A DNA stretch of 64,000 nucleotides from Macrostomum hystrix (taxonomy: Eukaryota > Animalia > Platyhelminthes). The translations under genes and the position numbers were made by a program. Position 1 is the first letter of the stretch. Every line of letters begins with the position of its first letter. The stretch spans positions 6,386,001 through 6,450,000 of the forward strand of contig CATNEN010000025.1 of assembly GCA_950097015.1 (NCBI GenBank), read 5' to 3'. This document shows positions 7,824 to 39,773 of the stretch, in pieces. The notes beneath the pieces are model-generated. The model made no database searches, was not told the DNA's origin, and worked only from the letters and a program-made list of their open reading frames with translations.

Positions 7824-8031
7824 GGGGGACTGTCGGCTTAGCGATTAGGGCGTCGGACTAACGAGTTGAGGGTCGGGGGTTCGATTCCCGCGACTTCATA
7901 GGAACAATTTGTGTCCTTTGGCAAGACAGTTAATTCTGCATTGCTTCAGTTCATACAGCTGTTAAATGGGTAACCGTCATTACTTGGGGTAATTGAGGGT
8001 GGGTGTGGCGTCCCTCCAGTCCATGGACTGA
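7824..8031 (+). mobile_element. tRNA-derived SINE family 1, copy 1 (CORE-like central domain), in KIAA0513-like intron 3
   Basis: tRNA-like head with B box GGTTCGATTCC (7878-7888); TGTGTCCTTTGGCAAGACAGTTAA...CAGCTGTTAAATGGG resembles CORE; shares GAGGGTGGGTGTGGCGTCCC..CAGTCCATGGACTGA with the other two copies. Confidence 0.75.
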
Positions 8032-12482: not shown

Positions 12483-13200
12483 TTTGACTGCAGTTGTACT
12501 AAATCTAAGTTTGTATTCCGAATTATTTTATTTTTATTTTATATCATCCAATGAAATCTTATGCATAATATGCGGGTTCTTGACTGACCTGTTTGTTCCA
12601 TTTTCTGCTTGCATGGATAGCATATGTTAAATAATATTAATCATATTTATAATAGCTTACTAATTAATCATTTTAAATGAATTGGGGTTGTGTTAAAAGT
12701 TAGTCCTGTTACCATAGAAACGCACATAAACGACGCAAAAGTTACTCTGTTTGTAGTCACTATACTAAACGCGACATTAGAGTTACAATAATATTTCCTT
12801 TTTTAATTTTATTTACTTAGTTAAGAGTTTTATAAACATATTATTTTATCTTTTCATTTTTATATTAAGTTTCCCTTTCTCAAATTCTGTGTTGTCTTTT
12901 TGCACCTAAATTTTGAATAGTGTTAACTGCCCAGTTTAATATCAAAGTTTTTATCATTATTTATCGACTAGTAGACACAATGTCCAATGCCGCTCATGCT
13001 AAATTATCCTTATATTTATTTTTCAATGCTAAATATACAAAAAATCATCATAGACAAGCTATTCAACATTAATTAGTCACTATGCATGGCATATCAATTC
13101 ACAATAGCTTTAACGCTCGCATTGTAGGCCTATTTATATTTATTGGAAGTCACTTTAACAGGAAACTTGTTGATTGACACATCAATTACCGTTGATTCCG

Positions 13201-15640
13201 CTCCTTCAGTGGGATTATCCTCTTTCTTTCTGTGGGATTACCCTCTTTTCTTTCTGTGGGATTACCCTCCTTTCCTTCTGTGGGATTATCCTCTTTCTTT
13301 CTGTGGGATTTCCCTCCTTTCCTTCTGTGGGATTACCCTCTGCTCCTTCTGTGGGATTACCCTCCTTTCTTTCTGTGGGATTGCCCTATTTTCTTTCCGT
13401 GGGATTACCCTCTTTTCTTTCTGTGGGATTACCCTCCGCTCCTTCAGTGGGATTACCCTCCTTTCCTTCTGTGGGATTACCCTCCTTTCTTTCTGTGGGA
13501 TTGCCCTATTTTCTTTCCGTGGATTACCCTTTTTTCTTTCTGTGGGATTACCCTCCGCTCCTTCTGTGGGATTACCCTCCTTTCCTTCAGTGGGATTTCC
13601 CTCCTTTCCTTCTGTGGGATTACCCTCCGCTCCTTCTGTGGGATTACCCTCCTTTCCTTCTGTGGGATTATCCTCTTTCTTTCTGTGGGATTTCCCTCCT
13701 TTCCTTCTGTGGGATTACCCTCTGCTCCTTCTGTGGGATTACCCTCCTTTCTTTCTGTGGGATTGCCCTATTTTCTTTCCGTGGGATTACCCTTTTTTCT
13801 TTCTGTGGGATTACCCTCCGCTCCTTCAGTGGGATTACCCTCCTTTCCTTCTGTGGGATTACCCTCCTTTCTTTCTGTGGGATTGCCCTATTTTCTTTCT
13901 GTGGGATTACCCTTTTTTCTTTCTGTGGGATTACCCTCCGCTCCTTCTGTGGGATTACCCTCCTTTCCTTCAGTGGGATTACCCTCCTTTCCTTCTGTGG
14001 GATTTCCCTCCTTTCCTTCTGTGGGATTACCCTCTTTTCTTTCTGTGGGATTACCCTCCTTTCCTTCAGTGGGATTACCCTCCTTTCCTTCAGTGGGATT
14101 ACCCTCCTGTCCTTCTGTGGAATTACCTTCTTTTCTTTCTGTGGGATTACCCTTTTTTCTTTCTGTGGGATTACCCTCCGCTCCTTCTGTGGGATTACCC
14201 TCCTTTCCTTCTGTGGGATTACCCTCCTTTCCTTCAGTGGGATTACCCTCCTGTCCTTCTGTGGGATTACCCTCTTTTCTTTCTGTGGAATTACCCTCCG
14301 CTCCTTCTGTGGGATTACCCTCCTTTCCTTCTGTGGGATTACCCTCCTTTCTTTCTGTGGGATTGCCCTATTTTCTTTCCGTGGGATTACCCTTTTTTCT
14401 TTCTGTGGGATTACCCTCCGCTCCTTCTGTGGGATTACCCTCTTTTCTTTCTGTGGGATTACCCTCCTTTCCTTCAGTGGGATTACCCTCCTTTCCTTCT
14501 GTGGGATTACCCTCTTTTCTTTCTGTGGGATTACCCTCCTTTCCTTCAGTGGGATTACCCTCCTTTCCTTCAGTGGGATTACCCTCCTGTCCTTCTGTGG
14601 AATTACCTTCTTTTCTTTCTGTGGGATTACCCTTTTTTCTTTCTGTGGGATTACCCTCCGCTCCTTCTGTGGGATTACCCTCCTTTCCTTCTGTGGGATT
14701 ACCCTCCTTTCCTTCTGTGGGATTGCCCTATTTTCTTTCCGTGGGATTACCCTTTTTTCTTTCTGTGGGATTACCCTCCGCTCCTTCTGTGGGATTACCC
14801 TCTTTTCTTTCTGTGGGATTACCCTCCTTTCCTTCAGTGGGATTACCCTCCTTTCCTTCAGTGGGATTACCCTCCTTTCCTTCAGTGGGATTACCCTCCT
14901 GTCCTTCTGTGGAATTACCTTCTTTTCTTTCTGTGGGATTACCCTCCGCTCCTTCTGTGGGATTACCCTCCTTTCCTTCAGTGGGATTACCCTCCTTTCC
15001 TTCTGTGGGATTTCCCTCCTTTCCTTCTGTGGGATTACCCTCTTTTCTTTCTGTGGGATTACCCTCCTTTCCTTCAGTGGGATTACCCTCCTTTCCTTCA
15101 GTGGGATTACCCTCCGGTCCTTCTGTGGAATTACCTTCTTTTCTTTCTGTGGGATTACCCTTTTTTCTTTCAGTGGGATTACCCTCCTTTCCTTCTGTGG
15201 GATTACCCTCCTTTCCTTCAGTGGGATTACCCTCCTGTCCTTCTGTGGAATTACTTTCTTTTCTTTCTGTGGGATTACCCTCTTTTCTTTCTGTGGGATT
15301 ACCCTCCGCTCCTTCTGTGGGATTACCCTCCTTTCCTTCTGTGGGATTACCCTCCTTTCCTTCAGTGGGATTACCCTCCTGTCCTTCTGTGGGATTACCC
15401 TCTTTTCTTTCTGTGGGATTACCCTCCTTTCCTTCAGTGGGATTACCCTCCTGTCCTTCTGTGGGATTACCCTCTTTTCTTTCTGTGGGATTACCCTCCG
15501 CTCCTTCTGTGGGATTACCCTCCTTTCCTTCTGTGGGATTACCCTCCTTTCCTTCAGTGGGATTTACCTCCTGTCCTTCTGTGGGATTACCCTCCGCTCC
15601 TTCTGAGGGATTAACCTCCTTACCTTCGGTGGGATATTTT
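13201..15640. repeat. Minisatellite, 24-nt unit CTGTGGGATTACCCTCCTTTCCTT
   Basis: About 100 copies; a unit length divisible by 3 explains the three 800-aa ORFs. Confidence 0.95.
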
Positions 15641-16199
15641 CGCTCTTTTTTCTGATTACCCTTAGCTCGTTTAATTGGGTTAATTCCAGTATTTTAAATT
15701 GCGATTAACTTCTCAATAAAATTACTAATAGAACACGAATGTATTTGTTCTACAATTCAAGCACTAATAGTGTCCAGATATGCAAAAAAACACAACATAA
15801 TGACAGAATAACAAAATGTGCGCCAATTTAGGATCAGGTTTTGAGCGCAGAGGAAGCCGCAAAGCTGCAAAGTTTCTGCGACACGTTGGCGCCACTAAAA
15901 ATTGATCCGCACCTGGTCTGGCTTGTCCGGCAAGTCGCGGCTGCTGCTAAAGACACTCCTGCCTCAATTCCTGAGACGCCCCTGTTTCATTTCCTCAAAG
16001 CGGATAGAAACGCGTCAGTCGCTCCTCACTGATACTGCCCCCCCGGGCCCCGGCGCCAGGCCCCGGCGCTGCATAATACTCGTAAGAGGCCAAAGTGAAG
16101 GATTGAAGCTTAGGAACAAGAATTGGAGGGTAGAGGAGCTTTCCTTTTGTTTTCAACAAATTCTTCTCGCTACTATCTGCGCCCCTCTGCCTCTCCATC

Positions 16200-19059: not shown

Positions 19060-19318
19060 AAGTCCTGAATTCATGACTTGAAGGTCGGGGGTTTGAGTCT
19101 CGACGCCACTGGAACAATTTGCGTCCTTTAGCAGGACACTTAACTCTGCATTGCTTCAGTTCAACCAGCTGTTAACTTGGTAGCAGCATTAGCTGGGATA
19201 ATCGAAGGTGGGTGTGGCACCCACCCAGTCCATGGACTGAACAGCCGTAAGCAGCCTTCAGCTGCGCCGCGCAATAGATGCGGCTGTGCTGTCGGCTGCA
19301 CATCTGGCCCAATTGGGC
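19060..19318 (+). mobile_element. SINE family 1, copy 2 (decayed head, CORE-like domain and tail present)
   Basis: Aligns by eye with 7860-8031 and with the 39650-39773 tail (CAGTCCATGGACTGAACAGCCGTA.GCAGCCTTCAG.TGCGCCGCGCAATAG). Confidence 0.75.
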
Positions 19319-20104: not shown

Positions 20105-20291
20105 GAGAGTAGAAAGAAGAAGAGAGGGGCAGAGGAAAGGAGGAAGAGAGGAGAGAGAGAGGGGCAGTGGGAGAGAGGAAAAGAGGGAGAGAGGAAGAGA
20201 GGGGGAGAGAGAGGGGCAGAGGGAGAGAGGAATAGGGGGAGAGAGGAAGAGAGAGGGAGAGAGGGAGAGAGAGAGGGAGAGAGAGGAGAGA
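20105..20291. repeat. GA-rich polypurine tract left of the ribozyme island
   Basis: GAGAGAGG-type units. Confidence 0.9.
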
Positions 20292-20349
20292 GGACACTGC
20301 CCATTGAATTTCAAAATTCTAATGTTGGAATCAATTCCGATATGTATCG

Positions 20350-20459
20350 AAAAAATTGACATCAGGATTCGAACCAAGGCAACTCCAGACGCGTTTCGCT
20401 CTTATTGGAGCTCATCAGTAGAGTCTAGCCTAGCGCTCTAGCCATTAGGCTATAGGCGC
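20350..20459 (-). mobile_element. tRNA-like Pol III unit (SINE-like) carrying the hammerhead between its A and B boxes
   Basis: tRNA-like 5' end GCGCCTA TA GCCT AATGGCTA GAGC G; A box TAGCCTAATGG (20452-20442); B box GGTTCGAATCC (20375-20365); TTTTTT terminator (20355-20350). Confidence 0.75.
20381..20425 (-). ncRNA. Minimal type I hammerhead ribozyme; predicted cleavage after GUC, between 20388 and 20387
   Basis: Minus strand GACTCTA-CTGATGA-GCTC(CAATAA)GAGC-GAAA-CGCG-TC-TGGAGTT. It has the full core (CUGAUGA, G10.1:C11.1, GAAA, UH), stem I of 6-7 bp with wobbles, a 4-bp stem II, and stem III reduced to one A-U pair with a palindromic CGCG loop. Confidence 0.88.
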
Positions 20460-20581
20460 TTGTTCAAATCCAGCTTTCAATCTCAACATATCGTAATCAA
20501 TTCGACAGCGCCCCGCAACTCAATCCATACTCACTCAACTCCGTGGCACTGACTCGGTCGTACGAGACGCCGGTGCTGGCC

Positions 20582-21677
20582 TGAGAGAGAGGGAGAGAGG
20601 GAGAGAGAGAGGGAGAGAGGAAGAGAGGGGCAGAGGGAGAGAGGAATAGGGGGAGAGAGGAAGAGAGGGAGAGAGGGAGAGAGGTGGAGAGGGAGAGAGG
20701 GAGAGAGGGAGAGAGGGAGAGAGGAAGGGAGGAAGAGAGGAAGAGAGGAAGAGATGGAGAGAGGAATAGGGGGGGAGAGGTAGAGAGGGAGAGAGGGAGA
20801 GAGGGAGAGAGGAAGGGAGGAAGAGAGGAAGAGAGGAAGAGATGGAGAGAGGAATAGGGGGGGAGAGGTAGAGAGGGAGAGAGGGAGAGAGGTAGAGAGG
20901 AGCAGAGGGAGAGAGGGAGAGAGGGAGAGAGGAAGAGAGGTAGAGAGGAGCAGAGGGAGAGAGGGAGAGAGGGAGAGAGGGAGAGAGGTAGAGAGGAGCA
21001 GAGGGAGAGAGGGAGAGAGGGAGAGAGGAAGGGAGGAAGAGAGGAAGAGAGGAAGAGATGGAGAGAGGAATAGGGGGGGAGAGGTAGAGAGGGAGAGAGG
21101 GAGAGAGGTAGAGAGGAGCAGAGGGAGAGAGGGAGAGAGGGAGAGAGGAAGAGAGGGAGACAGGAAGTGAGGGAGAGAGGGAGAGAGGGAGAGAGGGAGA
21201 CAGGAAGTGAGGGAGAGAGGGAGAGAGGGAGAGAGGTAGAGAGGAGCAGAGGGAGAGAGGGAGAGAGGGAGAGAGGAAGAGAGGGAGACAGGAAGTGAGG
21301 GAGAGAGGGAGAGAGGGAGAGAGGTAGAGAGGAGCAGAGGGAGAGAGGGAGAGAGGGAGAGAGGAAGAGAGGGAGACAGGAAGTGAGGGAGAGAGGGAGA
21401 GAGGGAGAGAGGTAGAGAGGTAGAGAGGGAGAGAGGAAGAGAGAGGGAGAGAGGGAGAGAGGAAGAGAGGGAGACAGGAAGTGAGGGAGAGAGGGAGAGA
21501 GGAAGAGAGAGGAAGAGAGAGGGAGAGAGGGAGAGAGGGAGAGAGGGAGAGAGGTAGAGAGGTAGAGAGGGAGAGAGGAAGAGAGAGGGAGAGAGGGAGA
21601 GAGGAAGAGAGGGAGACAGGAAGTGAGGGAGAGAGGGAGAGAGGAAGAGAGAGGAAGAGAGAGGGAGAGAGGGAGAG
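20582..21677. repeat. 1.1-kb GA-rich polypurine tract right of the ribozyme island
   Basis: GAGAGAGG-type units; almost no pyrimidines on the + strand. Confidence 0.95.
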
Positions 21678-22723: not shown

Positions 22724-23701
22724 TTACATGCTGCCAATGGCAGTCACATTGTCCGGGCTAGACTGTCCATTGTGCATATAATGCGACATGCACATCATGT
22801 GCTGCACCTGCTGCTGTAGGTCCGTCAGGCCGCCACCGCTGGCCGCAGCTATGGACGGCGAGTGAGCGCCGCCGCCTCCGATCGGGCTGTCCGGATCCTG
22901 CTTGAGCATATAGCTAGCTGCGGCTGAGTGCATGTAGCCCTGACTCGAAGGCGAGCCGTAGGCTGCGGCTGCGGCTGCGGCTGCTGAAGGCAGGTGGGAA
23001 ATATAGGCTCCGTAGTGCTGCATGCCCATCATACTGGCAGCCGCCTGCTGCTGCTGCTGCTGATGATGCTGCTGCTGCTGATGATGATGCTGCAGATGTT
23101 GCGGCTGGTGATAAGAAGCGGCAGCTGCGGCCGCCGCCGCCGCCGAGGAAGGATCCATGCCAAGGTGATGATGATGGTGGTACTGATGCTGCTGCTGTTG
23201 TTGATGCTGCTGCTGGCTCTGATGTTCCGGCTGGAGTTGCGGCTGATGCTGCGGATGCTGTGTCATGTACGGCTGGGCACTGTACAGATCTCGGGGCAGC
23301 TGCGGTCCTCCAGTAGGCAAGCCGGCTGGGCCGGCTGAGTAGCGATCCTGCCGCTTCAGCAGGGTCTTGGTCTTGCGCCTGGGCCGGTACTTGTAGTCCG
23401 GATGGTCCTTCATGTGGATGGCCCTCAGCCGCTTGGCCTCGTCTATGAACGGCCGCTTCTCGGTCTCGCTGAGACTCTTCCACTCGGCGCCCAGCCGCTT
23501 GCTGATCTCGGAGTTGTGCATCTTCGGGTTCTCCTGGGCCATCTTGCGGCGCTGGCCCCGGCTCCACACCATGAAGGCGTTCATCGGCCGCTTCACCCGG
23601 TCGTCCTTTCGGCCGCCGCTAAGCGCCACATCAACGCCGGAGCTCTTTGCTGATGACGTCATCGGAGGCGAGATGATGCCCAGGTGTCCAAGCGGTGTGC
23701 A
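22724..23701 (-). CDS. SoxB1: SoxB1 (Sox1/2/3/SoxNeuro-like) HMG-box transcription factor, exon 2
   Basis: HMG box [42 protein letters not shown]...[17 protein letters not shown] includes the group-B motif. A TTTCAG acceptor at 23702-23707 adds 13 in-frame codons before Met 23662. Confidence 0.95.
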
Positions 23702-38679: not shown

Positions 38680-39560
38680 ACCTCTGTTCTAACAGTTAAC
38701 ACTGCTGTTCTAACAGTTACCACTGCTGTTCTAACAGTTACCACTGCTGTTCTAACAGTTACCACTGCTGTTCTAACAGTTAACACTGCTGTTCTAACAG
38801 TTACCACTGCTGTTCTAACAGTTAACACTGCTGTTCTAACAGTTACCACTGCTGTTCTAACAGTTACCACTGCTGTTCTAACAGTTAACACTGCTGTTCT
38901 AACAGTTAACACTGCTGTTCTAACAGTTAACACTGCTGTTCTAACAGTTAACACTGCTGTTCTAACAGTTAACACTGCTGTTCTAACAGTTAACACTGCT
39001 GTTTTAACAGCTATAACTGCTGTTTTAACAGCTATAACTGCTGTTCTAACAGTTAACACTGCTGTTCTAACAGTTAACACTGCTGTTCTAACAGTTAACA
39101 CTGCTGATCTAACAGTTAACACTGCTGTTCTAACAGTTAACACTGCTGTTCTAACAGTTAACACTGCTGTTCTAACAGTTAACACTGCTGTTTTAACAGT
39201 TAACACTGCTGTTCTAACAGTTAACACTGCTGTTCTAACAGTTAACACTGCTGTTCTAACAGTTAACACTGCTGTTCTAACAGTTAACACTGCTGTTCTA
39301 ACAGTTAACACTGCTGTTCTAACAGTTAACACTGCTGTTCTAACAGTTAACACTGCTGTTCTAACAGTTAACACTGCTGTTCTAACAGTTAACACTGCTG
39401 TTTTAACAGCTATAACTGCTGTTTTAACAGCTATAACTGCTGTTCTAACAGTTAACACTGCTGTTCTAACAGTTAACACTGCTGTTCTAACAGTTAACAC
39501 TGCTGTTCTAACAGTTAACACTGCTGTTCTAACAGTTAACACTGCTGTTCTAACAGTTAA
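38680..39560. repeat. Minisatellite, 21-nt palindromic unit CTGTTCTAACAGTTAACACTG
   Basis: About 42 copies. Confidence 0.95.
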
Positions 39561-39773
39561 GCCTAGTGGTTAGAGCGTCGGTCTCACGACTTGGAAGATC
39601 AAGGGTTCGATTCCCGGCTCCACTGGAGCAATAAGTGTCCGCATCAGTTGGGGTAATTGAGGGTGGGTGTGGCGTCCCCCCAGTCCATGGACTGAACAGC
39701 CGTACGCAGCCTTCAGATGCGCCGCGCAATAGCCGCGGCTGTGCTGTCGGCTGCACATCGGACCCAATTGGGG
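39561..39773 (+). mobile_element. SINE family 1, copy 3 (internal deletion of most of the CORE-like part)
   Basis: A box remnant GCCTAGTGGTTAGAGCG; B box GGTTCGATTCC; tail shared with copy 2. Confidence 0.75.

Follow-up and report, generated by a model that had tools for sequence, protein, structure and literature searches.

The 64,000-nucleotide (nt) stretch of the flatworm Macrostomum hystrix considered here (assembly GCA_950097015.1, contig CATNEN010000025.1, positions 6,386,001 to 6,450,000; hereafter the window, in whose own numbering all positions are given) contains a hammerhead ribozyme motif on its minus strand, at 20381-20425. The locus raises the question of what such a motif does there: is it a genuine ribozyme, to which type of hammerhead does it belong, what kind of element carries it, and would it cut by itself or only together with a second copy? 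A first-pass annotation had described it as an intact minimal type I hammerhead with a palindromic CGCG helix III, had linked it to the minimal hammerheads of Penelope-like elements and had predicted that it cleaves as a dimer. As argued below, the hammerhead is probably the catalytic module of a solitary and young copy of a high-copy, non-coding retroelement of about 286 nt, of the retrozyme or Sm-alpha-like kind, lodged in a GA/CT minisatellite.

Read directly on the minus strand, positions 20425 to 20381 form a complete hammerhead in which every conserved position is present. After a G at 20425 come the 5' strand of helix I (ACUCUA, 20424-20419), the core residues C3-U4-G5-A6-U7-G8-A9 (CUGAUGA, 20418-20412), the 5' strand of helix II (GCUC, 20411-20408), a loop II of six nt (CAAUAA, 20407-20402) and the 3' strand of helix II (GAGC, 20401-20398); helix II and its loop as a whole occupy 20398..20411 and are closed by the pair G10.1-C11.1. 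They are followed by G12 A13 A14 (GAA, 20397-20395), A15.1 (A, 20394), loop III (CGCG, 20393-20390), U16.1 (U, 20389), C17 (C, 20388), the 3' strand of helix I (UGGAGU, 20387-20382) and a last U at 20381. A15.1, CGCG and U16.1 together make up the palindrome ACGCGU that constitutes helix III, and with the preceding GAA this segment spans 20389..20397. The scissile bond, as deduced from the motif, is predicted after C17 (20388) and before U1.1 (20387).

Helix I comprises six Watson-Crick pairs and, at its base, a seventh G.U pair between G20425 and U20381, which explains the span of 45 nt. Past this pair, predicted folds let helix I continue via a UA bulge (20427-20426) into a GGC/GCC stem, of which the 5' side (GGC, 20430-20428) brings the extension to 20426..20430, while its partner GCC lies at 20378..20380. 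All residues that define the type I core were thus encountered (C3 U4 G5 A6 N7 G8 A9, G12 A13 A14, A15.1-U16.1 and an H17 that is not G), in an arrangement with helices I and II on either side of the core, an open-ended helix I and G10.1-C11.1 as the closing pair of helix II. The core positions given in the first-pass annotation (CUGAUGA, G10.1-C11.1, GAAA and U16.1 C17), its stems I (ACUCUA/UGGAGU) and II (GCUC/GAGC) and its helix III, a single A-U pair closing CGCG, were all confirmed by this reading, and 20388/20387 is correct as the cut site predicted from the motif. Judged by its sequence, the motif is a real and intact type I hammerhead, for which self-cleavage is predicted.

A chance match to the consensus had to be weighed at this point in view of the shortness of the conserved core, its bare pattern, considered without helices, being expected 0.27 times per window. 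Our own type I descriptor, which requires the core together with a helix I of at least five base pairs (bp) and a helix II of at least three bp, retrieved, over both strands of the 64-kb window, a single site, namely the hammerhead at 20381-20425. When the window was shuffled 300 times under a first-order Markov model, no match appeared, and 300 further shuffled windows, searched under a stricter setting, gave one; once helices are required, one out of 600 shuffled windows thus matches. The hammerhead is also devoid of variants at the 10 % level among the contigs of a high-copy family, and the same motif recurs in another organism between different flanks (see below). A fortuitous origin is therefore effectively refuted, and its remaining probability is negligible.

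With respect to type, canonical metazoan type I hammerheads display a helix I of six bp and a helix II of four bp, with interacting loops on both, and a helix III of one to two bp under a palindromic loop of two to four nt (PMC4209133). In contrast, the minimal hammerhead ribozymes (min-HHR) of Penelope-like elements have a helix II of seven to eight bp, a helix I of four to five bp and an extra unpaired nucleotide before position 10.1, and are usually without loop 3 (PMC4209133). The motif conforms to the first definition, including the bulged extension of helix I, and departs from the second by its helix sizes. Because both these sizes and helix III fit the canonical definition in PMC4209133, it is classified from its sequence as a canonical animal type I hammerhead, like those of Sm-alpha, newt satellite 2 and HH9. 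The min-HHR candidate was rejected, helix II being four bp instead of seven to eight and helix I six bp instead of four to five. The first-pass description as an intact type I hammerhead was consequently borne out except for the word minimal, which does not suit a canonical metazoan type with an extended helix I, and the link to the minimal Penelope hammerheads has to be dropped, as PMC4209133 gives these other helix sizes and usually no loop 3. What the motif does share with them is type I topology, a proposed dimeric action through a palindromic junction and an association with retroelements.

The best match among Rfam families was Hammerhead_HH9 (RF02275), obtained in E-value mode (351 nt searched), with which 20365-20436 of the minus strand aligned end to end over the full model (38.7 bits, E 1.6e-8). 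From CUGAUGA through helix II to GAAAC, only one mismatch with the HH9 consensus was encountered, at a loop position, and the overall plan of a six-bp helix I followed by an internal loop and an outer stem is common to both. The shortfall in score is located in helix III and outer helix I: HH9 displays a helix III of three bp with a loop of four to five nt, in contrast to one bp and CGCG here, and the UA bulge of the window motif, which affects a single strand, is smaller than the internal loop of HH9. We take HH9 to be an amniote intronic element and not a mobile repeat.

The hammerhead is carried by a non-coding insert of 286 nt (20297..20582, minus strand), a copy of the high-copy repeat documented below. 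As seen by Tandem Repeats Finder and in the sequence itself, this insert is a unique sequence interrupting a GA-rich minisatellite, which bounds it on both sides (left flank, 20115..20294; right flank, 20585..21677, with a period of eight and about 136 copies). The minisatellite so divided measures ~1.3 kb, is GA-rich with a period of eight and displays, on its left side, a 52-nt higher-order unit. The insert is too short for protein coding, and its 286 nt fall within the range of retrozyme units (170-400 nt). Animal retrozymes of the non-long-terminal-repeat kind are indeed defined as non-coding units of ~170-400 nt with a type I hammerhead (PMC7229834), a description that suits the insert.

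As RNA of minus sense, the insert folds at -106.2 kcal/mol (z -5.7), a value reached by none of 200 shuffles, whereas the plus sense attains only -75.7 kcal/mol (z -2.95); hence the structure relies on G.U pairs formed by the ribozyme-sense strand. The minimum free energy (MFE) fold is a three-way junction closed by a long stem, the remaining branches being a short hairpin and the hammerhead. The 5' arm of this stem (20462..20503) and its 3' arm (20327..20376) enclose the hairpin with box A and the hammerhead, and the 3' arm includes the B box and the T6 run described further on.

The distribution of the insert was examined in public sequencing runs, used as assembled contigs. At least half of the insert words sampled were found in each of eight runs of one organism, and parts of the insert in two other organisms. 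In a single DNA run (X5), 59 contigs were placed on the insert with summed depths of about 2,800-44,600, a quantity that differs from a copy number. The insert belongs to a high-copy repeat. Among contigs aligned to it, no variant reached 10 % inside the hammerhead, and the listed departures of the window copy from the family letters numbered only four (20333, 20360, 20499 and 20505). Because these are the only listed differences from the letters common to other runs, the window copy is considered young; the changes at 20333 and 20499 are from CpG to CpA, as expected from methyl-cytosine decay after insertion. One contig of 332 nt from another run covered the whole unit, with family letters and GA-rich ends.

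Some contigs departed from the repeat within the hammerhead, with loose ends at 20391-20402, and two of them continued into GA-rich DNA, suggesting that copies can be 5'-truncated and that GA/CT microsatellites are favoured. Such a preference matches the insertion bias of Penelope-like elements toward microsatellites (PMC8557442), and it fits the proposal that retrozymes, often found as monomers, are the non-autonomous derivatives of these elements (bioRxiv 10.64898/2026.07.22.740005). Retrozymes are also expected in multiple copies, usually in tandem, and as linear and circular RNA (PMC7229834); high copy number was apparent in the DNA contigs, yet the window locus is a solitary monomer. As a separate observation, summed depth displayed a three- to four-fold peak at 20367-20399, where the B box and the hammerhead's 3' half lie, and several contigs diverged at 20391-20402, in one case continuing as another tRNA-like sequence. 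Peak and divergence together hint at subfamilies, or at chimeras sharing this module.

An alternative reading sees the insert as a piece of a Penelope-like terminal repeat (pLTR), since such terminal repeats carry type I hammerheads and favour microsatellites (PMC4209133, PMC8557442) and retrozymes are related to them (bioRxiv 10.64898/2026.07.22.740005). This origin is nevertheless unlikely: the satellite bounds the insert on both sides, and the hammerhead has the canonical architecture instead of the min-HHR described for metazoan Penelope elements (PMC4209133). In addition, no reverse transcriptase (RT) or GIY-YIG domain was detected in the 18 longest open reading frames (ORFs) of the window (at least 180 amino acids), shorter or broken ORFs not having been scanned.

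Beyond the family itself, a contig of a third organism (run X10) matched 20383-20423 only, that is, the hammerhead minus two end bases on either side, with five differences in 41 nt. Its flanks were unlike those in the window but complementary to each other over ~18 bp (-27.6 kcal/mol versus -6.7 +/- 2.3 for shuffles). Since these flanks are unrelated to the window and yet complementary, a hammerhead at the tip of a long stem recurs with different sequence. A metagenome scan for the core together with ACGCGU yielded 131 instances at 120 loci (L001-L120), and 81 of these instances displayed proper helices I and II; several loci, among them L105, L106 and L045, share the plan of a six-bp helix I and a four-bp helix II. 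Five contigs contained tandem arrays of 172-173-nt units, each with an ACGCGU type I hammerhead (L066, at 1661-2213, L093, L006, L047 and L107), and these look like typical small retrozyme arrays of eukaryotes. None of the 120 environmental loci displayed sequence kinship to the insert outside the ribozyme, and no B box was found downstream of any environmental ACGCGU hammerhead. They were hence used as comparators and not as family members.

The hammerhead is moreover flanked by sequences resembling the internal promoter of RNA polymerase III (Pol III). The consensus of the A box is TRGCNNAGTGG, and the motif TAGCCTAATGG at 20442..20452 (minus strand) agrees with eight of its nine specified positions. 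The B box GGTTCGAATCC (20365..20375, minus strand) is a perfect match to GGTTCGANTCC, and nine nt past it a T6 run (20350..20355, minus strand) resembles a Pol III terminator and may act as one. B box matches amounted to three in the window versus 0.12 expected, and the other two belong to the heads of short interspersed elements (SINEs) derived from transfer RNA (tRNA). An 18-nt stretch in the A-box region was 89 % alike to the head of such a SINE at 39560-39577, a resemblance that is not significant alone. Boxes and T6 run share the orientation of the ribozyme, in the order A box, hammerhead, B box, T6, so that internal A and B boxes are present as in a tRNA-derived SINE or an Sm-alpha-like element. 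As to a tRNA fold, ARAGORN returned nothing and the E-value mode of Rfam gave no tRNA match on the minus strand, the only one being weak and on the opposite strand (15 bits, E 2.4).

These signals would also suit a stand-alone host gene for a Pol III small RNA of ~110 nt, tRNA-like, with the hammerhead replacing the anticodon loop, given that the A-box-like motif, the perfect B box and the T6 run surround the hammerhead in the right order and orientation. We regard this as very improbable. The boxes lie within a 286-nt high-copy repeat lodged in a satellite, and copies sharing sequence outside 20350-20459 are already indicated by the contigs; besides, the searches just mentioned disclosed no tRNA cloverleaf, and the B box is paired inside the long stem of the MFE fold.

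The T6 run precedes the insert's 3' end by 53 nt and is followed at some distance by a T4 run; both are inside the unit, in contrast to the terminator-free unit of a tRNA-derived SINE. A Pol III transcript begun at these boxes would therefore reach only about 110-120 nt, short of the complete element. Either the boxes are an ancestral legacy, a different polymerase produces the template, or the short Pol III transcript itself serves some function. A related proposal, which we consider improbable, holds that the placement of the ribozyme is functional, each dispersed copy being its own Pol III unit with a hammerhead at the site of the tRNA anticodon arm and intron. If that were true, cleavage would yield a 2',3'-cyclic phosphate and a 5'-OH, the same ends as those produced by removal of a tRNA intron; the RNA would be handed to the tRNA-splicing ligase, to be joined or circularised, or would give small RNAs resembling tRNA halves; and the palindromic helix III would make the process depend on the concentration of the RNA itself.

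Two modes of cleavage were compared by folding. In the monomer, helix III can form only as a single A-U pair, whereas in a dimer it becomes a duplex of six bp. The active fold of the monomer amounts to -14.4 kcal/mol, and closing the one-bp helix III over CGCG costs +5.7 kcal/mol, which leaves -8.7 kcal/mol. The competing MFE structure, with the core GAUG paired to the CGUC of the cut site, stands at -17.0 kcal/mol, 2.6 kcal/mol below the active secondary structure. The isolated self-duplex of ACGCGU is worth -7.5 kcal/mol, and a swapped double hammerhead -36.9 kcal/mol, versus -34.0 kcal/mol for two free monomers and -28.8 kcal/mol for two monomeric active folds. The swap concerns helix I: pairing helix III in trans puts C17 of one RNA in the core of the other, and the strands of helix I must therefore be exchanged as well. 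A dimer model combining helix I in cis with palindromes in trans was rejected: such a structure is not nested, and no score could be computed for it.

Precedents for dimeric cutting come from amphibians. Newt and viroid hammerheads with a weak helix III cut as double hammerheads (PMC6155905), and the axolotl hammerhead HHR_Amex1, with one pair and a palindromic tetraloop, cleaves weakly when monomeric but efficiently once built into dimeric constructs (PMC7229834); dimeric cleavage is thus on record for the architecture with a one-pair palindromic helix III in both newt and axolotl (PMC6155905, PMC7229834, PMC4209133). Newt hammerheads, for their part, also cut as monomers when they have an internally looped extension of helix I and specific loops on helix II (PMC6155905). 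Dimeric cleavage, as had been predicted in the first-pass annotation, is accordingly favoured by architecture, by modelled energetics and by analogy with newt and axolotl, while a strict dependence on it is uncertain in view of the monomer cutting known through an extended helix I (PMC6155905). We would call such a dependence likely, not certain.

The opposite possibility, efficient cutting by a single extended hammerhead whose bulged helix I extension would dock on the six-nt loop II and so offset the one-bp helix III, deserves tentative consideration, although we doubt it. Helix I does run past the UA bulge into GGC/GCC and the long stem, the layout aligns with the internal loop and outer stem of HH9, and helix II and its loop nearly equal the HH9 consensus. 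Monomer cutting with an internally looped helix I extension is known from the newt (PMC6155905), and most invertebrate retrozyme hammerheads cut efficiently as monomers (PMC7229834). Yet the helix III stem is longer in those efficient motifs of invertebrates, the nearest match in helix III is the axolotl HHR_Amex1, weak as a monomer (PMC7229834), and a UA bulge on one strand is less than the internal loop of HH9. The cost of the one-bp helix III (+5.7 kcal/mol) and the competing GAUG/CGUC pairing (2.6 kcal/mol more stable) point in the same direction.

A cycle for the retrozyme-like element, which we hold to be the probable carrier of the hammerhead, can be proposed on these grounds. In transcripts containing two units, whether from tandem copies or as rolling-circle products, the ACGCGU palindromes would pair into a six-bp helix III, the strands of helix I would swap between the paired units, and each core would cut the other unit after C17. 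Unit-length RNA would thereby be released with 5'-OH and 2',3'-cyclic phosphate ends, circularised by tRNA ligase, and the circle could be copied by a Penelope-type reverse transcriptase into microsatellite DNA. The ligation step has a parallel in the axolotl and mussel units, which are ligated by tRNA ligase, RtcB circularising the axolotl unit (PMC7229834). The RNA of the solitary locus itself, either a product of about 110-120 nt extending from boxes A and B up to the T6 run or a read-through transcript, would adopt the cis rod with the GAUG of the core paired to the CGUC of the cut site; cleavage would then be slow as a monomer and faster only with a second RNA copy. At this locus, the hammerhead is probably a passenger that cuts slowly if transcribed.

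Several points weigh against this assignment or against parts of it. No second copy of the hammerhead, and hence no tandem partner, was found anywhere in the 64-kb window. A search of the whole window at Rfam gathering thresholds gave no hit, and the HH9 score of 38.7 is below the gathering score of 52, a threshold set by curation and not an attribute of hammerheads as a class. The repetitive flanks, both made of the same periodic GA-rich satellite, allow no target-site duplication to be recognised, which makes this criterion uninformative, and the reverse transcriptase partner is not among the 18 longest ORFs. Summed contig depth is not equivalent to copy number; of the runs matching the insert, none is on record as RNA and two are only guessed to be RNA, and contigs cannot show RNA ends. 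The internal T6 and T4 runs fit badly with Pol III as the source of a full-length template, which sets the promoter and the retroelement readings at odds. Finally, the long cis stem around the motif should, according to the modelled fold, hinder the swap of helix I strands between two finished transcripts. The earlier statement that a lone copy would need a second transcript in trans had left this swap out of account, as it had the existence of a high-copy family, and can be retained only in part.

Around the element, the recognisable ORFs of the window correspond to ordinary animal genes (collagen, HMG-box protein, rhodopsin-type receptor and AAA ATPase). The HMG-box ORF (22724-23662, minus strand) is intron-less, shares the strand of the hammerhead element and lies ~2.1 kb upstream of it; read-through transcripts could therefore carry the ribozyme in sense orientation. 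At 13143-15655, three plus-strand frames are all open for ~810 codons over a strongly AT-skewed repeat, one of them with a Cornifin-like low-complexity match; the region is possibly a gene for a repetitive structural protein or else a satellite without stops.

The tRNA-derived SINE was encountered in three copies (7830-7960, 19060-19260 and 39560-39700), two of them with B boxes (7878 and 39604). Two copies share a core starting with GGAACAATTTG...GTCCTTT...GCA.GACA, and the D-arm-like part of the SINE resembles the A-box region of the hammerhead element. Directly upstream of one SINE head, at 39466-39560, lies a tandem hairpin-forming repeat with a unit of ~24 nt starting with CTGCTGTTCTAACAGTTAACA, for which a match to a microRNA family was weak and well below threshold.

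Compared with known systems, neither the ribozyme nor its weak palindromic helix III, its dimer logic, its unit size or its repeat lifestyle is new, all of these being known in animals (PMC4209133, PMC7229834, PMC6155905). As a component of a known class of mobile elements the motif is to be expected; it is neither a new kind of ribozyme nor a host gene. In many animals, nonetheless, small circular RNAs stem mainly from ribozyme-bearing repeats, and how their hammerheads are switched on and off is still debated.

The satellite-2 retrozymes of axolotl and newt (PMC7229834, PMC6155905) resemble the window element in their type I hammerhead with loop elements on helices I and II and, for the axolotl, in its location within a non-coding unit (~330 nt, against 286 nt for the window insert); the axolotl HHR_Amex1 further shares the helix III of one pair and a palindromic tetraloop (PMC7229834). 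The amphibian hammerhead is characterised by its own behaviour, weak as a monomer and efficient as a dimer, whereas the window motif is known from sequence alone. Amphibian units are also mostly arranged in long tandem arrays, in contrast to the solitary window copy in its GA minisatellite; the unit sequences are unrelated, and it is in the window insert that Pol III-type boxes flank the ribozyme.

The Schistosoma elements Sm-alpha and Sj-alpha (PMC2770079, PMC8490949, PMC6155905) are likewise invertebrate high-copy repeats (~330 bp for Sm-alpha), with a canonical type I hammerhead, a similar style of helix II and loop, and Pol III promoter sequence, tRNA-derived in Sm-alpha. A hammerhead repeat with a tRNA-derived Pol III head has thus already been described in blood flukes (PMC2770079). 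tRNAscan-SE calls copies of Sm-alpha as derived from tRNA-Gln-TTG (PMC2770079), in contrast to the window insert, which is without a detectable tRNA fold. In the window insert the hammerhead stands between the A and B boxes, a layout of which no description was found in the literature searched; this is weak evidence of novelty, the position of the Sm-alpha ribozyme relative to its boxes not having been compared. With respect to the amphibian systems, the window copy adds an invertebrate case of the amphibian-style one-pair palindromic helix III, and its location in a very stable cis rod between Pol III boxes offers a natural test of whether cutting needs two units.

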